Shown here piece by piece: positions 1,712 to 60,560 of a stretch of DNA of 64,000 nt. The translations under genes and the position numbers were made by a program. The notes below the pieces were generated by a model. The model did no database searches, was not told the DNA's origin, and saw only the letters and a program-made list of their open reading frames with translations. The stretch comes from Lepidodermella squamata. Its lineage: Eukaryota > Animalia > Gastrotricha. The stretch lies in the NCBI GenBank assembly GCA_047495785.1, contig JBLDXI010000032.1, positions 3,906,001-3,970,000 on the forward strand. The letters are read 5' to 3'. Positions within the stretch are counted from its first letter, which is position 1, and each line of letters opens with the position of its first letter.

Positions 1712-4700
1712 CTAGCAATTCCAGGGACCGGTCCTTCGGACCGGCCAACCGATTGTGTAGACCTATTGAAAAATAAAGGAACCACAAAGAACGCTAACTT
1801 CATTTTGATGAATAACTTATCTGATATGTCCGGCAACGTTGTTGTCGCAGGCCAACGGTTACATTTAACAACGCAAAATAAATTTTCTATAACAAAGGCA
1901 AACAAAATTGATCAATGTCACACTATTAAGGGGAAATGATTTTCTGGTAGACAATGTTAGAAGTGAAATGGCGCTTTTTTCTTGTCAAATGGAGTCTTGC
2001 TTTTCGTCGGTGATGAGCTCAATGCGCGGTATGAAGACCAGCTTACCGGCTTGAGATCCGTTGATAATTCGCGCCTGAATGCTGTTCGGCAGCAACTTAA
2101 CAACGGATAGCCTGGTGCCGTTACATAACCCCCCAGCAGGATTCAAGTTTCGCAGCAATATTACAATTGCATCCTTTTTAAGGGATAGTTGATGTGGAGG
2201 CAAAGAAGCAGGCAGGAGCGAGTTTAAAAGCTCAACCGGGAAAACAGGACCTTGGTCTGGGTAGTAAACCTCATCAACGCTGAAGTAATTAACGGCATCC
2301 CCCGGGAACTTCTCGAAAATGCGGCTGTTAATGTAATTAACTTCCTCGTTTCTAGCCGCGAGTATGCATGAATCACCGATTGTTGCGGGGTCAATGTTGG
2401 ATAAGTCCCCATAGGTCAGCTCAATCAAGCGCGGCAAATCGGTGCAGCATTTGAGATATTTTGAGACGTAAATAGAACCAGGTTTGGGGCCAACGTTAAC
2501 ATTTTCACTTGTCTGACCGTTTCCGATTGTTAGCAGGTCATCTTTAAAATGAGGGTTCCCATTCTGCACTCGCATGTTTGTAGCCAAATTGAAAACTTTA
2601 ACCTCTCGCCACAGAGGCGAGCTTTTCAGGCATGCTTTCCAATAGTCCGCCTCACTTAAAGCTCGGCGAACAACGGGCAAACACTGTCTATTACGAAGTT
2701 AGTAGTTCAGTAATGTTAGTTTTTAATACTTGGTTAGAATTGAAATTATTTTACCTAAAGTCTCCTCCTAGCAAAACAACCTTCCCACCAAACGGCAAAT
2801 CAGGCTTGTCCATGAGGTCGCGAAGCGTAAAGTCTAAAGCCTCGAATGCAAACCTGAGTAGCATTGGGGCCTCGTCAATGATTAATAGTTCAGCCTGCTT
2901 AATTAGTTGCGCGGCATGCGATTGCTTCGAAATGGAGCACTTGGATCCTTCATCTAAAGACAACGGGATCGCAAATCTTGAATGGGCAGTACGACCGCCC
3001 TCAAGGAGAATAGCCGCTATACCGGAGGAAGCAGTAGCAAGGCATATTTTTCCCATAGCTCGCAAATGCGCCAAAATAGTAGAGTAGGTGAAGGTTTTGC
3101 CGGATCCACCGGGGCCGTCGATTGAGACAGTGCCAAGTCGATTGAGGACGGCGCTAACAACCGCATCGAAAGCAGATCGCTGATTGACATTGAGCAAAGG
3201 AGTGTTGCGCTGCGCAATAGTCAACTGATGCTCTACAGAATAAGAAGTCTCTTCAACAATTAACCGGTTAGCGGTATTCGCAACAGCCAATTCCGGTAGA
3301 TTGTAACTCGCTAGTGACTTATTGCTTTGGGATAACAGCCGATCGATTTCAGCTGAAGCTTGTTGGTAGATCCTCTCAGAAAAATCGGCATCAGGTTGAA
3401 GCAACCTAGCGGCATGGAGAACATCTTCGGACATGTAGTTTCGAAATTGAATCCATAACGCGAGGGCGTCTGATGGGGCTGAGAATAGCAAAATACTAAC
3501 AAAGAATTCCCTGACATCCTTGGGGCAAGCGTGACTGCAGACTTCTTCCATGGACAGCTTGATATGACTGTCGTCGGATGTAAGGCCGAGTAATCGACAG
3601 GCTTCCTGGAAGGTAGACGCCGGGGGACCGTCAGGCTGAACTCGTCGCAAGTCCTCGAAACTTTTTGCGCCGCTGCGGTGAAGTAGAAGGAGCCACAGGT
3701 AATATAGTTCTCCAGCCGTTGGCGATACCTGGTACATTCGGCCACAGGGTATTAAACCAAAATTAGGGGCACGCTTTCGCTTAGTCCAAACGCGCTTTTT
3801 ATCGTCGTAAGTGTGGCTGCCAGGGAAATCCATGTATTTAACGTGATAGGAGTCGTTATGGCTGGCGTTTTAGCGAAACCAAGCAGTGAGCGTTGACTCG
3901 GCAAGCCGATCGTTAAGCTGCAACTGCTGCATTGGATTGAAATAAACGTTTTGCTCTTTGGGAAGATGAACATCCAAGCGGACGATGAACATCCAAGCGG
4001 ATACTGTTCCTCCATCGGGTATGATGACGTTAGCCGTAATTACTCGATCTGGGCCCTGAAGAAGGTAGGTGAACGTCAATGAACAGCCAATAAATATTAA
4101 ATTTTTATTACCTTGTGAATGTACTTATAGATGTACTTGATGCTCTTTACGGTACTGCACACCTCGAGGTTGATGTGCGCATCGAAGCGTGACGTCAGAA
4201 ATTTGTTGTAAGGTACCACCCAGCGATTGTCGTAGATGAAACTTCTCGCACCGGTGCCTTTCGTCACTGTGACCCCGTTGTCACGTCGGCGATACTGAGG
4301 ATAACCATGGTCATCTAAAACCGTTTCATCGACGAAGGACTTCGGAAATGCTTTGGAGCAGACACGTTTTTCCAGGTCCCAACACGGAGAATTCGTGTGA
4401 CCAACACCACACGGTCCATGCAGTAAACACTTAGTGACTATGGCATGAAGCCTCGGTTCCGTAACTGGGTCGGGAATTTCTGCACATATCAGATTGTCGA
4501 CTTGCTCAGCAGTGCGTGGCTTGTATGGATCTGTCAGTGTGATCAATGCGTGTATGTGAGGCAGACCACGCTTTTGAAACTCCACAGTGTAGATTAAATT
4601 CTTGATTTCACCGAAAGCCTTATTCTTGATAATATGTTTCAACAACTCGCGAACTTTAGTACGAAAAACCCGAACGCAGAGATCAATTCTGTTTAGGGCG

Positions 4701-6330
4701 GTTTGGCCATGTAAGAGGTTACGCGTTATCTCCGGCCAAGCAGAATTGCAGGTAAACTGTAGGAAAGACACAAAACATGAGACGATCAACAAAAAATCAT
4801 AGGAAAATGGCACTAACCGTCAAGAAAAGGTCTGGTTTTTTATCTCGGCGAACTATAGCCATGGCATCTTGATAGTTTTGCGCTATTTGACGTGGCGACC
4901 CTTGCTTACTGGAAGGCAAAACAATGCGAACACGCGAACCAACATCGCTTGCTCCAGCACCTTCAGCAACTGCATCACAGAAACCGCGATAGTTCTCAAC
5001 TCGTAGCGCGGTTTGGTTGCGACGAATGAAAGCGAGATCGTTAGACTCAACCTTGAGCCAGGAATCGACGATGTACTGCTGAAATAATTTGCCGTACAAA
5101 TGTATGACAGGCATCCCACGAATGAAAATTCGATGTTGAATATAGTCACGTGCTGAAATCTTGGTTTGCTTTTGGTTAGGTTTCAAATTGACTCGCTGCA
5201 TGGTGATGTCCCAGCCAAGATCACCCCCAGGGAACATGATCGGATAGCTTAGGGGATCGTAACAGACGTGTGTCTCGTCGATGCGTTGAAGAGGACCACC
5301 CTTCAAACGAAGAATGATGTCTCGATGTGAGCTCTCAGCAGACTCGTCATCGCAAACAATTGCTGCAACCTCATCGTTGGCAGATTGTGGCGCATTATAA
5401 CGCCGGCGATCGAGTCCGTTAACACTTGCTTTGATTCGCATAACTCGTTCAGGAGCTTGCCGAAGAGTATTCAAGCTGTAGTCGTAAATGCGGACGAATG
5501 GATTGACGTCATACATCATTTCTTGCAAATTCGTCAAGACGACCGTGTTAATGTGAATTTCGGATCCGTATTGGAAGTTCTTGCGTATGGCGACTTGCTC
5601 AGAGGAGGATTGAACGAAATAAACTTGCATATAACGGGGTTCACTTCCTTCATCTGGTAAGAGAGCTCCGTGTCGATGGTAGAGAGAACCCTGCACCTTG
5701 AAAGCACCGAAATTTGGCGTGACGTCTTTGCACCCCATCGAAGTAAATGAAAGGCAATTATTGTATTTTCTGTCATTCAGTAGAAACTGAGTCGATTGTT
5801 GTTCTCCTTTGAGTAAGCGTCGCAAATAAAGAGGAGGCTCCTTTATAGGGTCAAGTATAAGCTGACCATGCTGACAGCACTGAGCAAATTCGGGGTGATC
5901 TGGCGAAGAATTAGTTAGGCGTTCGTCAGAGAAGTGTTGCGCACCGCAGTGTTCACATGCTGCATTCATAGGGCCTAAATCGTAAAGCGGCACGTAAGCC
6001 TCAAGATAGGGAGCCATGGCAGATGCAACGTTGGGAATCCAATTGTTTACTGCTACCGGTGCCAGAGGCGCAACAGGTGGTGGCACATTAAAATCTGGGT
6101 TGTCGTGCATTCCTGGGTCGAACAAATCCAAATCTAAGGCGTTCGGATAGTCTTGTGCTAGTAGGGCTTCATAATCACCGTCAATTATTACAGCAAACTC
6201 TCGGATTGCCTGATTGAGAGCTTCTCCTTCTTCCTCAATGGGACCTGCGGTGAAACAACTTTTCTGAGACTTCTAGCATTGAATTGGTGTTTTCCACGTT
6301 TAGGCGTCATACCCGTTCAGTTTTTATGCT
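1712..6330 (-). mobile_element. Helitron (rolling-circle transposon), defective autonomous-type copy; 3' end defined, 5' end not located (lies at or beyond ~6330)
   Basis: The minus-strand 3' terminus reads GCCGGTCC-GAA-GGACCGGT hairpin, 11 nt, then CTAG|T (CTAG at 1712-1715), the canonical Helitron end. It contains a RepHel gene. Confidence 0.92.
1926..6244 (-). pseudogene. Helitron RepHel (HUH Rep + Pif1-family helicase), inactivated
   Basis: Motifs: CxxC...CC zinc region, HUH (YTVEFQKRGLPHIH), Y2 (KYIYKYIHK), Walker A GPGGSGKT, DEAPM, GGDFRQ, NLNPAGGLCNGTRL. Introns at 4757-4817, 4056-4111 and 2688-2754. Lesions: in-frame TAA at 3870-3872, a deletion with an ~19-bp tandem duplication at ~3965-4001, and loss of helicase motifs V/VI near 1985. 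Confidence 0.9.
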
Positions 6331-45681: not shown

Positions 45682-46053
45682 ACGGCAGATACTAATTGAG
45701 TGTGATCCCGAGATGACCTCGCTATGATCGCACCCGCGCGTGCGCACAACTGACCCTGACCATGAGATATCAAATATATTTATGTTAATTAATTCCGATA
45801 AGGATATTAATACCAACTGCGAAATAAAGTTGCGGTTTGCCACTTGCCGATAGTTTAACATCTCATCCGGGTCAGCAATCAGCCCTAGAATTGCATTTCA
45901 AGCGGTGCCTGTATCATTTTACGAAATAGTTTACCTTCAAGTTGAGGTCATTCTGCTTATTTCCATAATTTTAGGTTGATGGATCACAGAAGATTTTTAT
46001 GAAAATATCAACAATTTTGCAAAATATTATTGTAACGCTGTTCGCTGTTTATT

Positions 46054-49000
46054 ATGTGCGACTGTTTTTTCCCCGCACCGCCTAATCGAAAATCATCGCT
46101 ATTACTTGGAAACGCTCGGCTTGAGTCGCAAAAGCAGGAACAACAGTTACAACGCCTTGTTGCCGCCTCGCTGCCGCAACTTTACCCGCAACAACAACAA
46201 GGTCATCCGTATCCTATCTTCCAGCCATCTTACAAGCCAGACAGGCCCTTGAGTAAGTATTGAGGCACAATCATTTAAATTGCATGATAAATCGCATGTT
46301 ATTAAAGCCCATTTAACACTGTTTATACAACACCCTGATTTCCGAAGCCACCTGTTTACACGGCATGCTTTCTCGCTGATTAATAATTGCATGTGATCGC
46401 TGTATTAATTTAATTTTAAAATTTTATTATTTGCGTCTGGAGGCCTCTTTGACCCGTCGACATTGTCGCGCCAAACAGGGTGCGCGTTCACAGGGACCCG
46501 CTCGCGTGTTAAGCTAATTTTAACAGTAAAAATGTGCCACTAAATCTATCACATTATAGTTAGATCGATTCCATATGTACCAGTGTGTGATACAGCTTGT
46601 CGCGGGGCGCAATTACGCTCGCTTTGCGATCGGTGCCAAAAGTCATGCGCCCTTATGTCAGCGCGAGACGCGCCTGTAATATCCAGTGCAAACACACGTC
46701 TCATCAAATTATTCCATTGATACATAGGCAGTAACCCTCAATCAGGCGACGATTTTGCGTATTTCCTCTTAGTTCATCGTTTCACACAATCCTCTTGATT
46801 TTTTTTATTAGTCCCATTGTTTTTATATGCTCTTAAGCTTCTTTTATCGACATACTAAATTGGTTGGCAGTAAACAAAAATGTCTGTAAACAAAACGAAC
46901 AACAATTTTGACCGCATAGCTGGGCTAAAAAATCAATTTGACAACTCTGTTTGTGACAAGATCTTTCAAACGCGGAGTATTCGATGCGAATCAAGTAATC
47001 ATTACAATTTACTTATTGGCAGGGACCATTATTTTTGTTTGCGCTTCGCCTCTTTTTCGTTGAGATATTTTTTCGAGCATGAGCTTGCCGTGACATCTTT
47101 TTTGTTCGTTTCGCAGACTGCATTTTCAGATTTCAGAAGACTTTCACTTATTGTCGAAACGACGAATGTCTCTCGAACCTTCTGTTGCACTACTCGTGGA
47201 TGGTGTGTACTATCGTGCGGTTCAAGTGCCCGTTTTTCGCACTTGAAAAACTGCTCGACCTTATGTCGCGCGTTTCGGGTGTCCAGAGAACACGACTTTT
47301 GGTGTGCGCGTCGTTAATTAATTACACAATATATTTTTAACCAATATGCTTAGCCCATCACCCATATTTTCTAGGCTAACATTCCATAGAGATTACAGTT
47401 GTAGCCAATGAATGAATCGGAGATGCCCTGCGGCTCTTTAATATACGATATTTTTTGATAATGACCATAGCTATTTTTGGTGAACGGTATTTGTCACATT
47501 TATTGAATATTTAACCCACACCCTCGCTCGTGATTTTAATTTTTAAGGCTGCCTCTAGCGGCCAGGCGATCGGTCAAAGTTTTGACAGGTGTCGCAGCCG
47601 CGCGGCCACGCAAAATGTAGGCGCAACCATAGCAAGCGTAGGCTGTCGCATCAATCAAAAACAACTGAATGTAGGTGTGCGGCCTTTTTTGCGCGCGATC
47701 ATATTTAATCAGCCATTGTTTATGGCATATTTTACGCGGAAATATTTTGAAAGTTATTTCAGGAATAAACCTATTTTTGGTCTAATAGATGCGATATAAA
47801 TGCAAATATGCTACTCGCGGCACTCGATATAACCAATATTTTGAAACAAACCCCAGGGATATGTTGCACCTGTTGAGCGAAAACAACAACGATATAGGAT
47901 ACCTATACGCGGACATTACATGAAAATTGAATTTTATTTTTGGTTAATTTTTTTCAAAATCCGCTAGAATATCACAGTGAATTAATTAGTTCAAGCCGCC
48001 TATCGTCCGAATTTTAAGAAAGGAAGCTGTTAAACTTGCCAGTTGATTTTAATTTTTCCTGCGATTTCTCACACGCTTTTTTCGCGAAATTCCCATGTCG
48101 CCATTCTCCAAAACAACAACAACAAATTGGGACTCCTGGTCGAAAAATAATTTACCGTAGTTTTTGCGGCACATTGTCTACCTGATTTGTTGTTCCTCGC
48201 GACATTTAGCCGTGTTTTCTTGTTTGGATTAGCGCTTACGGACAAAAATCGCGCGATAATTAATCAAATTTTAACTAGGCTTGTGCGCGCCCCGATTTAT
48301 TGCGCGCTTAGATATATTTAGCGCGCATCGTTAATTAAATGAAATAATAGCAATAATGGTGATCGACGACGCAGCCATGCAGCACATCTGCTGGTTTTGG
48401 TGGCCGGCCGCTATCAATCACCCCCGTATGCTGTAAAATTAGATGCCCAGACATGCAATAGATTGGCAGCTGAAGTTATAGCGCTTATCGTATAAACAAA
48501 AAGTCGCGCGCTGAAATATTTTTTCACTTGCGATGACTTGTTGCCATAAACAATCCCAACAATCGCGGCCTAGTTTTCAAGCGTTTTGTTATTGTTATAT
48601 AAATTAATCACTCGGATTCTGTTTTTATATTCCCATTTGACCTTTTTGATATTATTCACGTTATTCATTTATATCTGGAAGGAAATGTTACGCATGCAAG
48701 AGTGTCGGCGCCTTTAAAACTGCGCATTATTTTTGTCTCTCGAAACTTTGGTGGCGCCGGTCGAGTGTGGCGATATTGATAATTAAAAATCGGCGCCAAC
48801 TTCTGGTGTTGTTGCGGCCCCTGTTGACGGCGAAAAAATTTCCCCGATTTTCACATCGTCTGTGCGAAGTTTTGTGAATTTTAAAGTGAGGCGAATTGGC
48901 GATTTTATTCTGGCCGTTTTCATTTGACTTGATTTGATGCTTGCCGTTGCGCCGCCGCTCCTTCTCAGAGCCGTGTCACCGAGCCAAGTCGTACTTTGTT

Positions 49001-52000
49001 CACCGTTACATGGCCGCTGCCTACGGGCGATTGTTACCTGTTGCAAAATCAACTTCGAATTTGCTTCACCGATCACCGAATCCTAATCACCACGCCTCAT
49101 CGACGACTAATTTTAACCTGCCGCTGAAGAACTCGCCATCGATTCGCTCGCTACCTAGCGTTGTTCTCACCCGCGACTACTGCGATTACCACGCCGATTC
49201 GCCGCTGTTCAACCGCGATAACCGGCGATCAACCGTCGACAACTGCCCGTATATTTTACCACCGCCTAACAGCAACCAAATCGCTATCGTTAAGCGAGAT
49301 TACACCTTCGACTATTCAGGTAAGCATCGATTTAGCTGCCAAATTGAACGAGACCACCAATCACTGCGTGTTTATTTACATTGTAAGCTAATTATTAGTA
49401 ATATTACGCTATAATATATAAGCTCGCACCTAGTTATAAAGTCACAGTTTAGTACGTGTTGAAGCGCACATCAAAGTCGTGTGGAAAAGGCACCCGAAAC
49501 GTGTTGTTCCGCCCTACTGGTTTTTGCACCGCTTTCTTATGGTATTATCGCTGTTCCTTTTCACTGCTACTGTGTATTTACGTTTCGTTTTTATTATTAT
49601 TACTACGATCATGATAGGAGCCGATATTTGCTGCTTGGTGTAGTTTGTAGTTGATGTATCCTCCGACGGGTTTTTATTACGCGCCCACCTGAGTGAGCGC
49701 GAACGATAAAACCCGCACGTCCCACAGCCCAGCCAGGGTGTAAGCAAGATGATACCTGGGCGCGCGGTTCGGTAAATAATCACAATAATTTTCGCACGTG
49801 TTATACATATCGTGACTGGCGCCTGGCCTACTACTATACAGTCGCATCCACTGCCCGTTTTTACGATATCAAGGTATGATAGCGTTGTTTTTGCCGGCTA
49901 ATTATTCGCATCGGCTCACTTGAGTCATTAAAAATAAACCTCGCGCAAAATGGACCCAAATTTTATCGCTATGCACCTGTCAGACAGTCGAACTCCGTCA
50001 CATAATATCCGTCAATCATATTTCATTGACTTTTTGCCTTGTATAATGATGATAGCGGTAATGATGATGATGAGTCTCCCCCTCCTCTCTATGGATCGGG
50101 TAATAATAATTCCCTAGAAGAAAAGTTTACTCCCTCGCACCTAAAAATGAAGCGAAAACAACAGTTTTATTGTCTCATCATTCGTTCGCCATTTAGACTT
50201 GGCCATTATACAACATTTTCGGTCCATTGTTTTTGCAAAAACCATTGTCGACCACGCCTCAATGCATAACGTGATACTGTGAATGGGCGCGTTCGGCGTT
50301 GGACGCCAAAGCGTCTAAAAAGAAGTTTTTCTTAGCGCGCATTCGAACTCGAAATTAGACACGTGTCAATAAAGAAGCCACCAAGTGTCAGCGAGCTCCC
50401 AACACTTCTTCGTCATAGGTATCTAGCTTTATTGTAGCTTCCCTTATGCTAACACCCTCAATATGTTCGTTCATTTTCTGGAAATTAGTAGAATTAGATA
50501 TAAGTAAGTCCCAGAATTACCTCATATTACTTCCCTCGCTTGCTTATAGGATAGGATCGTGGGGCATCCTTACGTTAAGGAAAATTATCAGATATTTCCG
50601 CTAGCAGATTGGCATTATACTGGGAGCGCCATGGCGCAGAAATTGATAGAGCTGTTAATGCGCAATATTACTTCTGGGTGCGCGCTTCCTTCGACTAGTG
50701 CGCACTGATAAACGCGTTTTTTCACTCTTGCGAGGCGACGACAAAAAATCTTTGTTTATCTTGTGCTTCGAAGAGATAACAACACAATAATTTGCGTTAG
50801 AAAAAAATTAACTAGATTGCGGCGATTTGTTGAGCGTTGTTATGGTCATCGCGGCGCACTTTCGACATGCCGCTAACATCATCGAAAACGAGCGCGCTAA
50901 ATCGATTTCAGAGCCATTAGTATCATCGCCTGGTCATCACCGTTTTCATTTAAATAAGCGCAATAATCATGCACTGATTCAGTTGTCGAACAAGTTCGCG
51001 TGCAAATGGATTTCACTTCCCCGCTATATGTGGCGTGCCGGATTCGGCCCGATTGGCGTCGGTGCTTTCCAATCTTCCGGGCACACGATTTTTCGCGCGC
51101 CGGCTAAAATTTTCTAACTAAATAATAGCTTGTTGCACATTTTTCCGCCGAAATTCTTTACTCTAACGACGCCATCAAGTATGATAGGTCGCGATGACAA
51201 CAAGATGTGTTTTTGGCCGACCCGCCGCCGTCATTCGGCTTATTTCGACGACAAGCGCGCATCGCCAAGCGCTTCAAGTGCGATCAACGCGCGTTACGAT
51301 GGTACTTTTTCGAGCTTGGCAGGTTAGGTACGACAGTGATGGCGTACCTCTTGCTTAATTACCAAAGCAAGAAATCGCATCACTTGAGTAATCCGCCTTA
51401 ATTACTTGCGGGTGCGCCGATTGGGACGCGCGTGCGTTGCGGTGCGCAAACAGCGCCACTGCGCCGCGCCGAGAGCGCATCTTGACAGCGCCGCGCACCG
51501 GACCTGGCTGCACTCGTCGCAGCTAATAATGGCGCCGTGTCATCGTTTAGTGCCCGCCGTTACCGGTGCCTTGTCGGCGTCGCCAGCGATCGCCGGTGCG
51601 TTCCAAACAACGCGCCCACTTGCAGGCAGGCGTAACGCCACTGACGCGTCGCACAACGTCTCTCACGCAAAAACAATAAAAATACGGGTAGCGCTCGCAA
51701 AAACTACCCTATGACAGTAGCGTTGAGGCGAGCGCATGACAGCGACGCCACGTCCGCTTGATTTTTGGTTCTGACATATCGCACTCACGTCACGTTTTAC
51801 CTCAATCCCATAATCCGACCGGTCATATCCTTGCTAATTTTCCCTCCGACCCGGTCTCATTTCCATCATTTTTCACGTAGATGATTTCGCCGATTTGGGC
51901 TAAACTTTGATCCTGTCTTATTACCTACCATGAAAGACTGGCTGAAGAAGGCGCTAGATTGCCGTATTCCGGGTTAGTTGAGTCGCGCCACCCTAACCCG

Positions 52001-53695
52001 CTTTTAGCCATCACTTATTTTGCTACCGTTCTCGTGCCCTTCCGCACGGTGCGGCTAAATTCCATCGCGCCACGTTTAGGATAACCTCTTACCAGGTCGC
52101 GCAGTATTTGCCGAACGTTTGCGTAACATCGGCAGCGCCCAACACCTTTGTACCAGCTTAGCACACGTTGTAGCCGATGTGCCGGGTAGTCACATATAGG
52201 ATTGTCGTAAAAATGTCGGTGTGTTAAATCAAGTGCCGGCTCTTCTTAGCTTAGGACTAAGTCAATTCGCCGCATCCTGAGTAGACTTCCTACGACTAAG
52301 CAATATACATAGATAGATGTAGAATACTCTGTTTTCTCACCGACAATGGAACGTGACTTTGTGGCGATAGGACCTTGGAAAGGTAAAATTGGTTAAACTT
52401 CCGCTCGCGTTAGGCCAAATAAATTATAGGTTACCTTATTATTACCGTGGGAATCTACCTGTTTCTCTGCGTCATCTCCCGTGCATTTCTGCGTGTGTGG
52501 CTGTCTCTTCTTTATTTATTAAGGAAATAATACGAATTATTTTATTTCCGATAAATATTATTGTTATATAAGTTATAATTTTGAACTGAGCTGAATTACT
52601 GTTGTCGAAAATTGCGGCCCGTCGCCAGTTTTTTGCCGATAATTTGCGTTCGGCCATGGCAACGCTTGGCGGCAGTTGCGCCGGCAATCCCGAAAAACAA
52701 CAGCACCACCTGCACCATCCGATGGACATCGAGAAACAAGCCGTGGCGTCGTCGACGGGCGCCGGCGTGCCCACCGTGACCGCGGCAAAGCCCAGCCCGG
52801 GTGGCTGGTCGTCGGCTATTATGCGCGGGTGCAATAACATCGAATTTGACCCGGGCTTTCGGACAAGAAAGGGTAATAGATACATCGCCAGAGAAAACAC
52901 GCTCAAAATGATTAGGCGGGTGCCACTATAATAATTTATGCGCGCTAATATAATTAAGGGGGATTTTTATTATTATTTCCGATTTTAAAGCATGCCGTTT
53001 GATTTTTCATTTGTTTGTCTTTCTGATTTTTCACCTTCATAATGTTCATTGCCCTTTCTGTTGGTTTTAGTAATTGCCGAATTTACATAGGCGTCTTGTC
53101 TCATTTCATATATATATAGGTGTCTTTTGACATGTGTCCCTCTTTTTGGCCACATTTTCTCCGTTTGTTTTATGCGAATAATCACCCCTTTCTATAGACA
53201 TTGGTCACATATTATATAGCTTTATGATAATAATAATAATAATGATAATGTTCGTTAATAGATGTAATAGTTGTATTTTGAAAAAGAAAACGGAGCCAAT
53301 TGTTGTAAAACGAGCAGCAGAATACCTGCGTGCGCAAAAGAGCATTCATTGATTGAGAAATACCTACTATCCAACAACTACTCCTCCTCCTCTCGTTCAT
53401 TCGTTCGTTGTAGAGCATGTGCCTGCTAGCGCCGTGTCTGATGGCTGCATTAGGCGATGGCGATGGCGGTCAGGGCCATCATCATGGACGAACAGGCGCC
53501 GGTTTGTTGATAAAACAAGTTTCATGCGTTTTTACTAGCCCTATACGTATAAAACTATGTGTATTTTTACTACTGCTACTACTATTACTACCATCAACAC
53601 TGATGTATAAAGTCCCTATCATATTCAACTGTCTGTACTCAGTCTTTGCAAAAAGATGAATAATAACTCGCCAACTAGGCGAGCCAGCAGCGGGA
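46054..53695 (+). other. Array of alternative ATG-containing first exons (all phase-1 donors) for the downstream claudin-like gene
   Basis: Stronger candidates: 46054-46252 (GTAAGT), 48356-48425 (GTATGC), 49010-49319 (GTAAGC), 51205-51322 (GTTAGG), 51529-51595 (GTGCGT), 51930-51972 (GTTAGT), 52346-52382 (GTAAAA), 52656-52872 (GTAATA), 53417-53501 (GTTTGT). Weaker: 47166-47202, 53656-53695, ~50631-50697. Each is 3n+1 nt and joins TTTTCAG|GC-ATG at 54164 in frame. Confidence 0.7.
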
Positions 53696-54163
53696 GTGGG
53701 CGCGAGCCGGGGCTTTGAAACGCGTTTCGCTTGTTAATTGGTATTGTTTATTGATGTCATGCATTATTTTATATGTATATTCGTAAATATACCTACCTGT
53801 TCGTTCGTATACCTATGCTCGTTTCGTACAGCCTGCCTTTTCCACAACGTCCATTTGTTATCACTACTTATATTACAAAATTAATATATTATCTTACCTA
53901 ATTGTAAATCCACTGTTTACTATTTATTATATCCGATAACTCTAGCGCACTGATAATTACGCATGTTGAACGCTCTTTTGCACGTTTAAAACATCCCGCA
54001 GTAGTTATACTAACGTACCAGTCAGGTACTTACATAGCTCTTGTCGGTTCAAAGCAGCCGAGAGTAGTAGAACTAATCAAATTAAGAGAATGCTAGATTA
54101 TTTTTTAGTTCTTTTTTGGCATTATTTGTTGTCACTGTTTTTTTACATTTTTCATTTTTTCAG

Positions 54164-55547
54164 GCATGAATGGTACCCATTTGAATATTCGACGAGTCGC
54201 CTCCCTCTTCCTCTCCGCGGCAGCAATTGCGCTAAATGCCGTCAGGTATGCAATTAATTTTTTTGTCTCGATTGGTTATTCATGTATTAATTATTATAGC
54301 TATTCAACGCATCGATGGGCAACGATGCAAAACGTCCCAGTTAATCGTTACAGTCTACCCCTATTATTCAAGGATGAATACACGAAAGATCAAGATTGCA
54401 GGTTTGTTGCCCACCTTGAAAAGTAATGACACGTGATTTGTGATTGTGCGAACATCTAGGACACCTCTCTGCCACCTGCTCGATCTGCGCCGAGATGGTC
54501 AATTACAGGCGGCCGTTTACCGCGGCCTTCTCAAGCGCTGCGAGGAGATCGAGAAGCGCGTTGGCCAAGATGCCATGTTTGTTTTGTGTCGCGAAAACCC
54601 TGAAAACTACAACGCCGGTACGTTTGCCGTTATATTGCCGCGTTACCATTTTGTCGCCCATGTTGTTGTTATCACTCGCTTGTGACACCTATGGTGATGA
54701 GCGCTGCTATTTGCCCGGATGACAGCGAGAGAGAGAGATAACACGGGGCCGTAATATAACAATAATTACTGTTACAACAATACGTTGTAGTGGAGGCTAT
54801 TTGCCAGTGTTTACTCATATTATTGGTGTTGTTTCCGCCTTATATAGAAGTCGCCATCGTTCAGCGTCTACAGTTCGCTGGCATGATCTTCCAGGCAACG
54901 GCTGTATTCAGTGCCATCACGATTTTGACCTTAATACGCCTGGCCGAAAGCCGCCGCAGACTGGCATCCTTCTTAGGCTCACTTTTCCCGTCCTTACTCG
55001 GTGGTGAGTATTTCTTTATCATGACTTGATAAAATAAAGCTAAACGCGCGAATTTTAAACATCGATTTGAAACGAAATGAAAGCAAAATTGAAAATTCAA
55101 TTTTTTTTTATAGCTCTTCTAACCGGCCTCGCTCTGCTCATATTCAGCGAACATCTATTAAAAGGCGAGATGCTGGACTACTCGTTCTGGATGGCAACTA
55201 TCTCGGGCATACTATCCGTTGTTACCGCCGTACTCATATGCGGTGACATGGTGACATGCCCGTCGCGAAGCAGTCACCGAGGCCTCGCGCACCAGGGCAT
55301 GGCGCCGGCGAACCGGGGCGACAACGACCCAGGCGCGAACGTGTCTTCAAGCGGCTCCGGCAACAACCTAGGCTCCTCCGCGCCGCCTCTACCCAGCAGC
55401 CAACCTCCGGCTACGCCTCAGGTGAACCGGCCGGGCGGGCGGACGACAGGTAACGATGACATGCCGCCTCAGGTCGACTTCCCAGCCCTCCAGTCAAGCA
55501 GTGGAAAGCAGCCGTCGTTCGGCTATGTGACCCGGCCGCCTTTATGA
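54164..55547 (+). CDS. Claudin/PMP22-like tetraspan protein, constant exons
   Basis: Exons 54164-54245, 54300-54401, 54460-54617, 54848-55003 (in-frame alternative acceptor at 54791), 55114-55547. TM1 is followed by W...RGLLKRC...C, then three more TMs with LDYSFW and a Pro/Ser-rich tail. Confidence 0.8.
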
Positions 55548-57712: not shown

Positions 57713-59128
57713 ATGTTAGCTGCTGCGATCAAAGGCGCACGAGCTGCCGTTGCTGCTCGCGATAATCCCGCCGAGGTGAAGCCGATGCCAAAAACGCCTT
57801 GTGCTGCCCGAAAGTTCCAACCGGCGCCGGCTGAAATGCGTAAAAATGGGGGAAATTGCACGCATGATCTCACAAAAGCAATTTCTCTTTTGGCTCTGTG
57901 CGTCGGTCTTATCGTGAAAGGCGTGTCCTACGACAACAGCCATTGGGCCAATCAGGACGAGCTTGACGTTGTCAACAACAAGGACCACTTTCCTATCATG
58001 ACATCTTTCATCGGTAATCTATATTATTTAAATCGTTTTTTTTTTAATTTTATACTGGCAATTTAGACAATGTCAAATCTGGGAAACACGAAAACTGCGA
58101 AGACCCAAAGTGCAGGATTTTCTTCGATAAATACGCAGCCTTGCAAACACTGTCCCATTCCCGAGGTGGCAGTGGTTCCAGTTCGGTACCGCTTCGTGGA
58201 ACCGTGAGCCGAGGGGTTAACCGACGATGTGAACGTGTTGCGTTGCTACCGTCAAGCGATACTCCCCTTGGCAGTGGTTCGGTGTCAAAATACGAGAAAT
58301 GCACTGTCGATAAGCAAACGGAAATAAACGGTACCTTAAATTAAGAATACCCAATTTGTTCTAATTTATTGTGATTTTTAGAGTTCAAGACTATTCGATA
58401 TCTGCTAATCGCTAGCATGATCTGCGACGCCCTTGGCTTGTTAAACTGGGTGGCAATTCTTAGTCATTCTGGGCACCCTTCCAACAGTGGCCTGGCGCGT
58501 CTTTTCCTAGTCACGAGTGCTTTGTGCGGCTTCATCGCCGCGCTTTTGACTGCTCTTGGTCTCGGCCTATTCGCGCAGGCTGTTGACGTTTTCGAAGACT
58601 CCCGTCTCTACCTGGGCTGGCCGTTTTACGCTGTTTGCGCCTCAACCGTGCTTTCGATTATCACAGCTTTCACTGGATCGGCCCGGCTTCAAAAAGCTGC
58701 AGTTCAATGTTAGTAAAACTAGTCAATTCTTCGAATTATCTCTGACGTGTACATTTTTAGCTGAGGAGAAACCTCGAAAACGGAGGCAGCTGATGGTTTC
58801 ACCGGCGTTAAGTGTCATCGATATGTCGGGTGATGATTTCGAAGCCGCTTACCCGTTCGGCTGCAACATGTTACCGCCTGGTTATCGAACCGTAGCTGGC
58901 TATAACGGCGTCATTGTCGCCTCACATCAACAACCCCGTCGCAACAAGTTCATAGCGCATGCCGCAGCCCCGTCGAGTGGAACATCATCGGCGTTGTACT
59001 GCGCCGACGATGAAACAATCGATGTGGCTGAAATGCCGCCACCCAACGTGCAAGAGTTCAATCAGTACCGAGCGAATGCGCCGAAAAGAGACAACGATAA
59101 AGATGACTCGGCTTTCCGGCGCGTTTAA
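57713..59128 (+). CDS. Claudin/PMP22-like tetraspan protein (paralog 2)
   Basis: Exons 57713-58013, 58067-58330, 58382-58708, 58761-59128. Motifs SYDNSHW, RGVNRRC...KC and YLGWPFY, with four TMs. Confidence 0.8.
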
Positions 59129-59416: not shown

Positions 59417-60560
59417 ATGTCAATAGCTCGACTTGCTATAAATAGTGGCATTTTCTCGAATGCAAGAAAAAATCATCCGAAAAAACATCTGATTGCGAGA
59501 TGTAACCTTGGCACCCATGAACCACATTCGAAGGTGTTGCATCGACGATGCGCGCATGAATGTCCCATTATTTTTTCGCTCCTGGCTTTTTGCGTCTCAA
59601 TTATTGTGAAAGGCGTTGCTTATGACAACAGTCGATGGGCCAACTATGACGAGGTCGACGTTTACAACAATAAGGAACAATTTCCAATCATGAGCGGCTT
59701 GATAGGTGAGAATCGATCGATTTTGATAGGATTTTTATCGAATTTTTCCATTTTAGATATGAGCTCAAGTAAGACAGGTTTCGACTCGGGCAGCTCCAGG
59801 TGTGAAGAGGCTAAGTGCCGCAATTTTTTCGAAAAATTGACAGCGATGCAAACAGTCGCGATGACTCAGGGCAAGCCACCCGTGTCATTGCGGGGGTCAT
59901 TCAGCCGTGGCGTTAATCGACGCTGCGAACGGCTTTCCCTTTCCGACGGCTCGCCATCGAAATACGACAAGTGCACAGTTGATAAACAGGTCGAAATCAA
60001 CGGTGAGAATTCAACTGAATAAAATATGATCATCCCTTTGTTTTTTTGTAGAATTTCGGACTATTCGATTCCTATTTATCGCAGCTATGATCGCGGAATG
60101 TTTTGCAATATGCGCCTGGGTCCTAGTTTTTGTTAGACCTGTTAATTCAGGCGAAGCGGCCACGATTACTCGCCTCGGGCTAGTGATAGCCGCCATGTTA
60201 GGCTTTGTCGCTGCCCTGCTAACCCTGCTCGGCTGTGGCTTGTTCAGTCAAGCCGTCGATGTTTTCGACGACCCGCACATTTTCCTCGGCTGGCCGTACT
60301 ACGCCACCTTAATCAGCGCCCTACTCGCGCTTCTAACCAGCGTCATAGCCGCCTCGATGCTGCGATCACGTGACTACGACGACGCAGATTACCGGAATAT
60401 TTTGATCAGGAAAAACTTGAGCGGGCAACAAGTTGAAACTATGCTCGCCTCGTCAGATCTGCTCGGAAATCTGGACACCCTGCCTAAAATTAGTAACAAA
60501 GACCGGACAGTCAGTGAACCAGAAATACGCCGACCCTGCGTGTCATTTGAACATGTTTAA
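59417..60560 (+). CDS. Claudin/PMP22-like tetraspan protein (paralog 3, tandem duplicate of paralog 2)
   Basis: Exons ~59417-59705, 59757-60002, 60052-60560. Motifs AYDNSRW, RGVNRRC, KCTVDKQVEIN and FLGWPYY. Intron positions match paralog 2; the start codon is uncertain. Confidence 0.8.

Follow-up and report, generated by a model that had tools for sequence, protein, structure and literature searches.

Does the long gene-free region upstream of a four-pass membrane-protein gene in the gastrotrich Lepidodermella squamata supply that gene with many interchangeable N-termini, or with only a few? The gene lies in a window of 64,000 nucleotides (GenBank assembly GCA_047495785.1, contig JBLDXI010000032.1, positions 3,906,001 to 3,970,000 of the forward strand; coordinates below are those of the window), in which the gene-model introns are mostly 49-58 nt, as the initial annotation had noted with its figure of about 55 nt. 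That annotation also described about 8 kb upstream of the gene as free of any conventional gene, and this description holds: between the stop codon of the upstream gene (45681) and the acceptor at 54164 no ORF exceeds 157 aa and nothing matches Pfam. It listed nine short frames in this region and proposed that they act as variable first exons giving one claudin-like protein about 10 N-termini. Each of the nine does start with ATG, run for 3n+1 nt as far as a GT, and read on into 54164 without a stop codon. Our verdict is that this is an ordinary alternative-first-exon gene, a larger array being possible; with moderate confidence, we regard it as an orphan gene for a four-pass membrane protein that has at least two promoters and first exons.

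The constant part of the gene comprises the following exons.

54164-54245, + strand: constant exon 1, with a phase-1 acceptor, an internal ATG at 54166 and TM1; the joint 54245/54300 is present in cDNA
54300-54401, 54460-54617, 54848-55003 and 55114-55547, + strand: constant exons 2-5, the remainder of the 309-aa tetraspan

Read from ATG 54166, these exons encode a protein of 309 aa, and the spliced product shares 41-54% identity with the relatives P0001-P0003 along its length. ATG 54166 is homologous to the start methionine of the relatives P0002 and L004, and it is directly preceded by the acceptor TTTTCAG/GC ATG, the TTTTCAG lying 2 nt 5' of this conserved codon. One relative is intronless, and acceptor-like sites occur 14-21 nt upstream of the start methionine in the relatives L003 and L004. 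Our RNA data are one small cDNA-like public run (X1) kept as contigs, in which minor isoforms can be hidden. A spliced contig of 1324 nt (depth 42) from this run joins 52872 to 54164 (GT..AG, skipping 1291 nt), the only junction into 54164 in X1, and X2, a DNA run, lacks the joined form. The proposed opening of the constant exon at 54164 in phase 1 is confirmed by this cDNA joint, which uses the acceptor; 54164 is thus a real internal acceptor, beyond a start-proximal site. The notion of 54164 as a pure leader acceptor, with the 8 kb as its outron, is ruled out by the cis junction. The joint defines these upstream features.

52565-52572, + strand: promoter box TATATAAG for exon E_C below; cDNA cover starts about 40 nt further on, at 52605
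52605-52872, + strand: verified first exon E_C, with a 5' UTR from about 52605, a CDS at 52656-52872 (72 codons plus 1 nt) and the donor AGG/GTAATAG
52873-54163, + strand: 1291-nt intron, spliced out in the cDNA; a long T-rich tract and TTTTCAG form its 3' end

The first ATG downstream of the TATATAAG box is 52656, in the context gccATGg, and further X1 contigs cover 52627-52843, with a loose end at 52605. Joining E_C to the constant exons predicts a protein of 382 aa with an added N-terminus of 73 residues, and this tail before TM1 is predicted to be low-complexity and cytoplasmic. The gene model is corrected accordingly: the main transcript encodes 382 rather than 309 aa, from a start 1.5 kb upstream of the obvious ATG. 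Inside the verified intron, X1 cover is patchy and shallow at 53181-53502 and 53821-54097, which we attribute to unspliced RNA.

Two further frames deserve consideration as first exons.

48748-49319, + strand: probable alternative first exon E_B, with a CDS at 49010-49319 (103 codons plus 1 nt), the donor CAG/GTAAGC and a TTTAAAAC box at 48713
46054-46252, + strand: possible alternative first exon E_A, of 66 codons plus 1 nt, starting MCDCFF, with the donor TGA/GTAAGT

On a codon-score scale with a mean of 0.183 for real 70-codon windows and of -0.035 for null ORFs (99th percentile 0.153), E_B scores 0.178 and E_A, the top ORF of the region, 0.167; both fall in the top 1% of null ORFs and are exon-like in codon usage. 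E_C scores 0.150, and antisense ORFs across the same GC-rich patches as these three long exons score below 0. Promoter signs accompany two of the exons: the box at 52565 with cover from 52605, and the TTTAAAAC box at 48713 with low X1 cover of E_B starting about 35 nt later, at 48748. The E_B donor has the best donor score in the region. At 49010 the X1 depth does not exceed that of the patches inside the verified intron, and the putative leader contains an ATG upstream of 49010, at 48937, in another frame. E_A lies outside the stretch compared with the cDNA and DNA reads; two upstream ATGs, at 45980 and 45998, are near it and would interfere unless the start site were within about 50 nt.

The six remaining frames are short.

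51205-51322, + strand: candidate of 39 codons starting MCFWPTRRRH, in phase, with no X1 cover and a codon score of 0.064
51529-51595, + strand: candidate of 22 codons, in phase, with a high-scoring donor CCG/GTGCGT and no X1 cover
51930-51972, + strand: candidate of 14 codons, in phase, with no X1 cover
52346-52382, + strand: candidate of 12 codons, in phase, with no X1 cover
53417-53501, + strand: candidate of 28 codons starting MCLLAPC, inside the verified intron; low patchy cover extends to both sides
48356-48425, + strand: candidate of 23 codons, probably a chance frame, with a weak donor CCC/GTATGC

The X1 contigs contain no junction from the 53417-53501 candidate, and there is no X1 cover of the 48356 candidate in bin 48402-48601, only its last 24 bases being within the compared stretch. 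In X2 the 51205 candidate shows a single A-to-P change, at 51271; overall, X2 and the window differ at too few sites for constraint on the candidate exons to be judged. A tblastn search of all candidates against the relatives' contigs L001-L004 matched constant exon 1 only, and metagenome scans found nothing. No pair of candidate exons is similar (best E about 1), the upstream region contains no internal repeats, and no 6- to 8-mer is shared by the DNA upstream of the candidates beyond the level at random positions. A canonical TATA box followed first by the exon's own ATG occurs at one candidate exon only, and no box and cover start comparable to those at 52565 and 48713 was found for the other candidates.

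In-frame joins alone mean little, because about 96 phase-1 frames exist against about 85 per phase in shuffles. When any GT was taken as a donor for frames of at least 8 codons on the + strand of 46000-54163, phases 0, 1 and 2 held 72, 96 and 89 frames, with about 85 each in dinucleotide shuffles (P=0.19). Restricting donors to GTAAG, GTAAT or GTGAG, a choice made post hoc, gave 2, 11 and 2 frames against 3.7 expected (P about 0.005); a matrix built from 11 donors of this gene family gave 3, 13 and 5 distinct ORFs, and one built from 23 putative donors gave 2, 6 and 3 against about 2.9 expected. Even at a stricter threshold, about six phase-1 frames are expected by chance. The phase-1 enrichment on which the array idea depended is therefore absent with unfiltered donors and present only with stricter ones, P ranging from 0.2 to about 0.005 with the donor model; because the stricter donors give a roughly two-fold phase-1 excess, some of the short frames may be real. 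The verified donor AGG/GTAATAG scores near zero in both matrices; thus donor strength discriminates poorly in this genome, and for the same reason our verdict is not based on the matrices. Training donors taken from introns by open-frame bridging proved to be mostly false sites and were rejected, and the 23-donor set was obtained by filtering bridged introns for codon score and acceptor quality, some of its sites being doubtful.

These results bear directly on the full array, that is, at least nine alternative first coding exons with their own promoters or joined by trans-splicing, giving about 10 unrelated N-termini. We consider it very doubtful. All nine frames are in phase, the phase-1 excess appears with some donor models, the donors of several short candidates match real ones in score, Met-Cys opens three of the nine, and a long gene-free stretch is unusual for a compact genome. 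Yet a single junction into 54164 was seen, the four short candidates at 51205, 51529, 51930 and 52346 have no cDNA cover, the excess disappears with unfiltered donors and shrinks with the broader matrix to 6 frames against about 2.9 expected, no promoter motif is common to the candidates, a canonical and well-placed TATA box marks one exon only, and frames of 12-23 codons are inseparable from noise. A smaller version is unlikely to a slightly lesser degree: at least six unrelated phase-1 first exons, several with lipid-anchor-like Met-Cys starts (MCDCFF..., MCFWPTRRRH..., MCLLAPC...), might swap the tail and so send the tetraspan to different membrane domains or cell types. If more candidates were real, the locus would be a compact and tractable case of N-terminal tail swapping in an orphan membrane-protein family, and it would allow one to ask whether long 5' regions retain phase-matched ATG-to-donor frames or simply tolerate them.

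The opposite extreme, in which only the 52656 exon belongs to the gene and 49010 and 46054 are instead an independent small transcript (such as 46054-46252 joined to 48969-49414), a non-coding RNA or fortuitous ORFs, seems to us improbable, if less so than either array. Through the acceptor-like CCTTCTCAG at 48968, an in-frame junction of 46252 with 48969 could form, the 49010 frame remains open for 32 codons beyond its donor, a homology search found no homolog of its ORF, and no 49319/54164 junction occurs among the X1 contigs, which can hide minor forms, E_A being outside the compared stretch. However, both frames end in strong donors in the exact phase needed by 54164 and use codons as real exons do; no polyadenylation signal follows the 49010 frame, and X1 cover is absent from bin 49402 onward (none between 49402 and 52401), the low mean of bin 49202-49401 suggesting a drop near the 49320 donor and not read-through. 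The acceptor at 48968 is a good one and makes 48969-49319 a symmetric phase 1-1 exon of 351 nt, so that serial splicing of 46054-46252 to 48969-49319 to 54164 would be open and in frame, adding one N-terminus of about 184 residues to give a protein of 493 aa. This is the least probable reading, because X1 cover is already present from 48748, before that acceptor is reached and about 35 nt past the TATA-like box, and the verified main form begins at 52605, skipping the 46054-49319 exons. A somewhat better, still minor, chance attaches to a reading that complements the others, namely that 54164 also serves as a spliced-leader trans-splice acceptor, through which transcripts that start in the intron or lack a donor would make the short ancestral protein from 54166. 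The strong T-rich TTTTCAG acceptor 2 nt before the conserved ATG resembles the nematode-type outron layout, relatives start at the homologous methionine and, in L003 and L004, have the nearby acceptor-like sites described above, and a further TTTAAAAC box lies at 53985, inside the verified intron, together with the low X1 cover at 53821-54097. Unlike an outron layout, the acceptor is cis-spliced from 52872 in RNA and no leader was seen; the X1 contigs, which can hide minor forms, contain only the cis form and no loose end or leader at 54164.

We thus favor a gene with a few alternative first exons, and propose that it works as follows. A TATA-box promoter at about 52565 would start the first exon, in which the first AUG, 52656, opens the 72-codon frame; this exon is cis-spliced over the 1291-nt intron to the phase-1 acceptor at 54164, as seen in cDNA. 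From their own starts 4.8 and 7.9 kb upstream, 49010-49319 and perhaps 46054-46252 would use the same acceptor, giving two or three unrelated N-terminal tails. The idea that variable first exons feed this gene therefore stands for the spliced 52656 exon and gains from the exon-like codon usage of 49010 and 46054 and the cDNA cover of 49010; the figure of about 10 N-termini does not. ATG 54166 would be the ancestral start, because relatives begin there, and most of the six short frames are probably chance products, about 85 such frames per phase being expected. The remainder of the 8.5-kb stretch may be promoter, enhancer and intron DNA, rich in TAATTA sites (13 in 8.2 kb against about 3 expected).

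Animal genes often have several promoters with different coding first exons; what cDNA shows of this arrangement is therefore ordinary. Plectin and claudin-18 have alternative promoters and first coding exons, the latter joined to a common second exon. As in these genes and in claudin-10, a first exon lying upstream, behind what appears to be a promoter of its own, is here joined to a common acceptor, and the change is confined to the N-terminal end of the protein; plectin is also alike in that its alternative first exons encode short unrelated N-terminal sequences. The earlier statement that no such layout was known for a claudin is contradicted by claudin-10, which uses alternative exons 1a and 1b (PMC6862131). 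In claudin-10, however, the alternative exon carries TM1 together with the first extracellular segment, whereas here TM1 is in the constant exon, only the disordered cytoplasmic tail varies and one join was observed. Protocadherin and UGT1A variable exons are paralogs arranged in tandem; they code for entire functional domains, and a conserved promoter element precedes each of them. The candidates at this locus likewise stand in a row upstream of one constant acceptor, with matching phase, but they are unrelated, short and low-complexity, and one was seen in use. The analogy breaks down on the features tested: because the candidate exons are not paralogs and have no common upstream motif, the locus does not qualify as a protocadherin/UGT1A-type cluster.

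The gene belongs to an orphan tetraspan family. A protein search returned three relatives, and an exhaustive profile search found only five family members among 1.84 billion representative proteins. Two paralogs downstream (57713-59128 and 59417-60557) are distant relatives, and both have N-terminal tails of 45-50 residues that share an exon with TM1; long cytoplasmic N-termini are thus normal for this family, and the earlier comparison with paralogs that lack an array, which took a short N-terminus as the norm, was wrong in detail. Membership in the claudins, which had been assumed, could not be demonstrated. Among claudin-type profiles (PF00822, PF13903, PF06653 and PF07062), only PF06653 appeared, at E=0.022 (15 bits, cut-off 28.7), a Pfam search of both paralogs and P0002 gave nothing, and a PDB sequence search gave no match. 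The claudin loop-1 signature is GLW...C...C (a PROSITE pattern); loop 1 of this protein has W33 and four cysteines (60, 65, 88 and 104) and no GLW motif. An AlphaFold model from four sequences tentatively places helices at 8-36, 113-144, 149-179 and 188-213, with a mean pLDDT of only 41. Setting aside the missing signature and database matches, the protein would resemble claudin/PMP22/EMP in its four predicted helices, its predicted long first extracellular loop with four cysteines and its cytoplasmic C-tail, close to whose terminus a Tyr-Val is conserved.

The constant tetraspan gene has introns of 54, 58, 230 and 109 nt and encodes 309 residues from ATG 54166, which lies 2 nt past the phase-1 acceptor at 54164. 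The features concerned are as follows.

52565-52572, plus strand, TATATAAG box, upstream of the RNA cover start at 52605
54164-54245, 54300-54401, 54460-54617, 54848-55003 and 55114-55547, plus strand, the five exons of the constant tetraspan gene
57713-59128 and 59417-60557, plus strand, distant paralogs in tandem (419 and 347 aa)

The preceding plus-strand gene apparently ends at stop 45681, with AATAAA at about 45825, and no ORF between 45681 and 54164 exceeds 157 aa; this interval has neither a Pfam match nor internal repeats, in agreement with the initial annotation, which described this stretch as lacking a conventional gene. TAATTA occurs 13 times in the 8.2 kb of 45786-53959, where shuffles predict about three (43 copies in the whole window), and by motif content the gene-free stretch looks like regulatory DNA rich in homeodomain sites. 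The 54164 acceptor has a long T-rich tract and TTTTCAG before the first constant exon; the tract (54130-54163) is much longer than those that end the short introns within the gene, a length that would fit pairing with distant donors or with a leader.

Two public runs were compared with 48402-54401, a span outside which exon 46054 lies: X1, a small, cDNA-like run from 2015 in which 11% of the sampled words are present, and X2, in which 82% are present and which looks like genomic DNA from a different individual. An X1 contig of 1324 nt (depth 42) joins 52872 to 54164 (GT..AG, 1291 nt skipped) and also 54245 to 54300, and neither joint is present in X2 across the compared span. Thus, the proposed exon 52656-52872 is really spliced to 54164. 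One X1 loose end presumably carries the reverse complement of a Smart-seq template-switch oligo. Because cover over this exon starts at 52605 and no ATG separates the TATATAAG box from 52656 (gccATGg), the main transcript encodes, by the scanning rule, a 382-aa protein with 73 N-terminal residues added. Among the donors that had been listed as feeding 54164, only 52872 was recovered in X1 over 48402-54401; no other junction into 54164, nor a loose end there, appears among the X1 contigs of this span, which is weak evidence because contigs drop rare forms. Outside the verified exon, X1 cover is low (depth 4-13). It spans 48748-49283, over the 49010 exon, starts about 35 nt past a TTTAAAAC box at 48713 and, as the depth bins imply, ends before 49402; two more patches, 53181-53502 and 53821-54097, both lie within the verified intron. 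There is no X1 cover in 49402-52401, and the candidates 51205, 51529, 51930 and 52346 are therefore unsupported in this run; cover is likewise absent from 48402-48601, a stretch that takes in the compared part of the 48356 exon, its last 24 bases.

Codon usage was scored as log-odds trained on eight Pfam-supported ORFs in the window, with real 70-codon windows giving 0.183 ± 0.072 (leave-one-out) and Markov simulations of the region giving -0.035 ± 0.081 for ORFs of 66 codons or more (99th percentile 0.153). The frames at 46054 (0.167), 49010 (0.178) and 52656 (0.150) rank as the top three among all ORFs of 30 or more codons on the two strands of the region, and the antisense ORFs across these GC-rich patches have negative scores. 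For the 51205 frame the score is 0.064; candidates shorter than this are too short for codon scoring. The sole X1 difference in the 49010 frame (49138 A>T, synonymous) and the sole X2 difference in the 51205 frame (at 51271, Ala to Pro) are one event each and carry no weight. The idea of alternative N-termini is right in principle for one exon and plausible for two more, 49010 and 46054, while a set of about ten is unsupported. The case for these two has weak points. The putative leader of 49010, from 48748 on, includes an ATG at 48937 that is out of frame and begins a 49-codon frame overlapping 49010. The acceptor-like CCTTCTCAG at 48968 would permit an in-frame combination of 46054-46252, 48969-49319 and 54164 (493 aa); cover 5' of 48969 favours a first exon here instead. 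For 46054, transcription would have to start no more than about 50 nt away for ATGs 45980 and 45998 not to come before it.

All nine frames listed in the initial annotation (46054, 48356, 49010, 51205, 51529, 51930, 52346, 52656 and 53417) are present, each running from ATG for 3n+1 nt to a GT, and joined to 54164 all are stop-free, with products of 322 to 413 aa. When every GT on the plus strand of 46000-54163 was accepted as a donor (at least 8 codons, dinucleotide shuffles), distinct ATG-to-GT frames numbered 72, 96 and 89 in phases 0, 1 and 2, against about 85 per phase in shuffles (P=0.19), and nine in-phase frames are not by themselves beyond chance. The phase-1 enrichment was thus absent with all GT donors and appeared with stricter ones, where the outcome depends on the definition of a good donor. 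GTAAG, GTAAT or GTGAG donors, a set chosen after the verified GTAAT donor was seen, gave 2, 11 and 2 frames by phase, where 3.7 would be expected (P about 0.005); one ORF accounts for three of the 11 phase-1 frames, and the earlier list shares only 46054, 49010 and 52656 with them. A matrix of 11 donors from the gene, its paralogs and two neighbours gave 3, 13 and 5 distinct ORFs, with about 6 expected from a background elsewhere in the window of about 3 per phase per 4 kb, and one of 23 putative donors, picked by acceptor quality, gave 2, 6 and 3 against about 2.9. The verified donor (AGG/GTAATAG) scores near zero in both matrices, and donors of confirmed introns here are very diverse (GTATGC, GTTTGT, GTACGT, GTGAGT, GTAATA). 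A two-fold phase-1 excess is possible and not robust, and a few real exons plus about six chance ones would fit it. The nine frames were accurately observed, yet as listed they are largely what chance gives.

Protocadherin and UGT1A clusters combine paralogous variable exons with a conserved promoter element. Here the candidate peptides are unrelated to one another and to the N-tails of the paralogs, and no 6- to 8-mer is common upstream of the candidates beyond the level at random positions; these two defining features are therefore lacking, and on them the comparison with such arrays was not upheld. Alternative first coding exons are common, and the tetraspan gene comes closest in kind to the plectin-type layout, in which many short first exons encode unrelated N-termini. 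Claudin-10 uses exon 1a or 1b (PMC6862131), and there the alternative exon encodes TM1 and the first loop.

The protein can be said to be a tetraspan with a four-cysteine first loop. Its only Pfam hit is sub-threshold (PF06653, a nematode claudin-like family, E=0.022), the paralogs and one relative have no Pfam match, and PDB gave none, so that "claudin-like" describes a resemblance and no membership. An AlphaFold model from the four sequences has four long helices, at 8-36, 113-144, 149-179 and 188-213, but its mean pLDDT is 41. A word-indexed search yielded three relatives, 41-54% identical and each from an ENA metagenome assembly, and among 1.84 billion representatives a profile search picked up only five proteins, two of them fragments. 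The closest full-length relative, P0002 (318 aa; contigs L001, 1882-2838, and L002, 613-1569), comes from a eukaryotic metagenome contig and is intronless, in contrast to the four or five introns of the window gene. P0002 and the relative on L004 start at the Met homologous to 54166, and the L003 ATG lies three residues further in; the relatives' short upstream flanks contain nothing resembling the candidate exons. The paralogs carry N-tails of 45-50 residues in the same exon as TM1. From these starts and tails, the short form is probably ancestral, and cytoplasmic N-tails are common in the family. In the paralogs the first loop is about 130 residues long, and the two share the motifs VSYDNS.WAN, NRRCER and KCTVDKQ.EIN. 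The P0002 gene adjoins a tRNA and a U6 gene, which on L001 lie side by side at about 615-1135, just 5' of it; in the window, about 380 nt separate a tRNA gene from a U6 snRNA gene at 15826-16396 (minus strand).

The route seen for the 52656 exon runs from a TATA promoter through a first exon bearing the first AUG to cis-splicing into the phase-1 acceptor and a longer N-terminus, and one or two further promoters and first exons may feed the same acceptor. It is plausible that transcripts reaching 54164 without an upstream donor receive a spliced leader there and yield the short protein that starts at ATG 54166, although X1 showed no such form. With this arrangement, donors adding an out-of-frame AUG to the leader would be harmful and in-phase donors tolerated, and this tolerance alone could skew the phases with no short frame being functional. 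Acceptor-like sites lie 3-6 nt 5' of the ATGs of two short candidates, TTGTAG/AGC ATG at 53414 (53411-53419) and TCGTCGCAG/CTAATA ATG at 51523 (51517-51531); they have the same layout as 54164 and could mark leader acceptors. Met-Cys starts occur in three of the nine candidates (46054, MCDCFFPAPPNRK; 51205, MCFWPTRRRH; 53417, MCLLAPC) and in 6 of 90 ATG frames on the plus strand of the region, against 2.4-3.6% window-wide; these could be palmitoylation-type starts, and the 51205 N-terminus resembles the MACCFPKRRRRR alternative start in the same genome.

Relative to the window, X2 has 25 differing positions and three indels in the 1.6 kb of 49367-50980, against one differing position in 48741-49366 and seven in 50981-54401; 49367-50980 is a hypervariable block with better conserved flanks. 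Elsewhere in the window, 2751-6131 (minus strand) holds ORFs of Helitron type, in which a Helitron_like_N and a PIF1 helicase domain are recognised.
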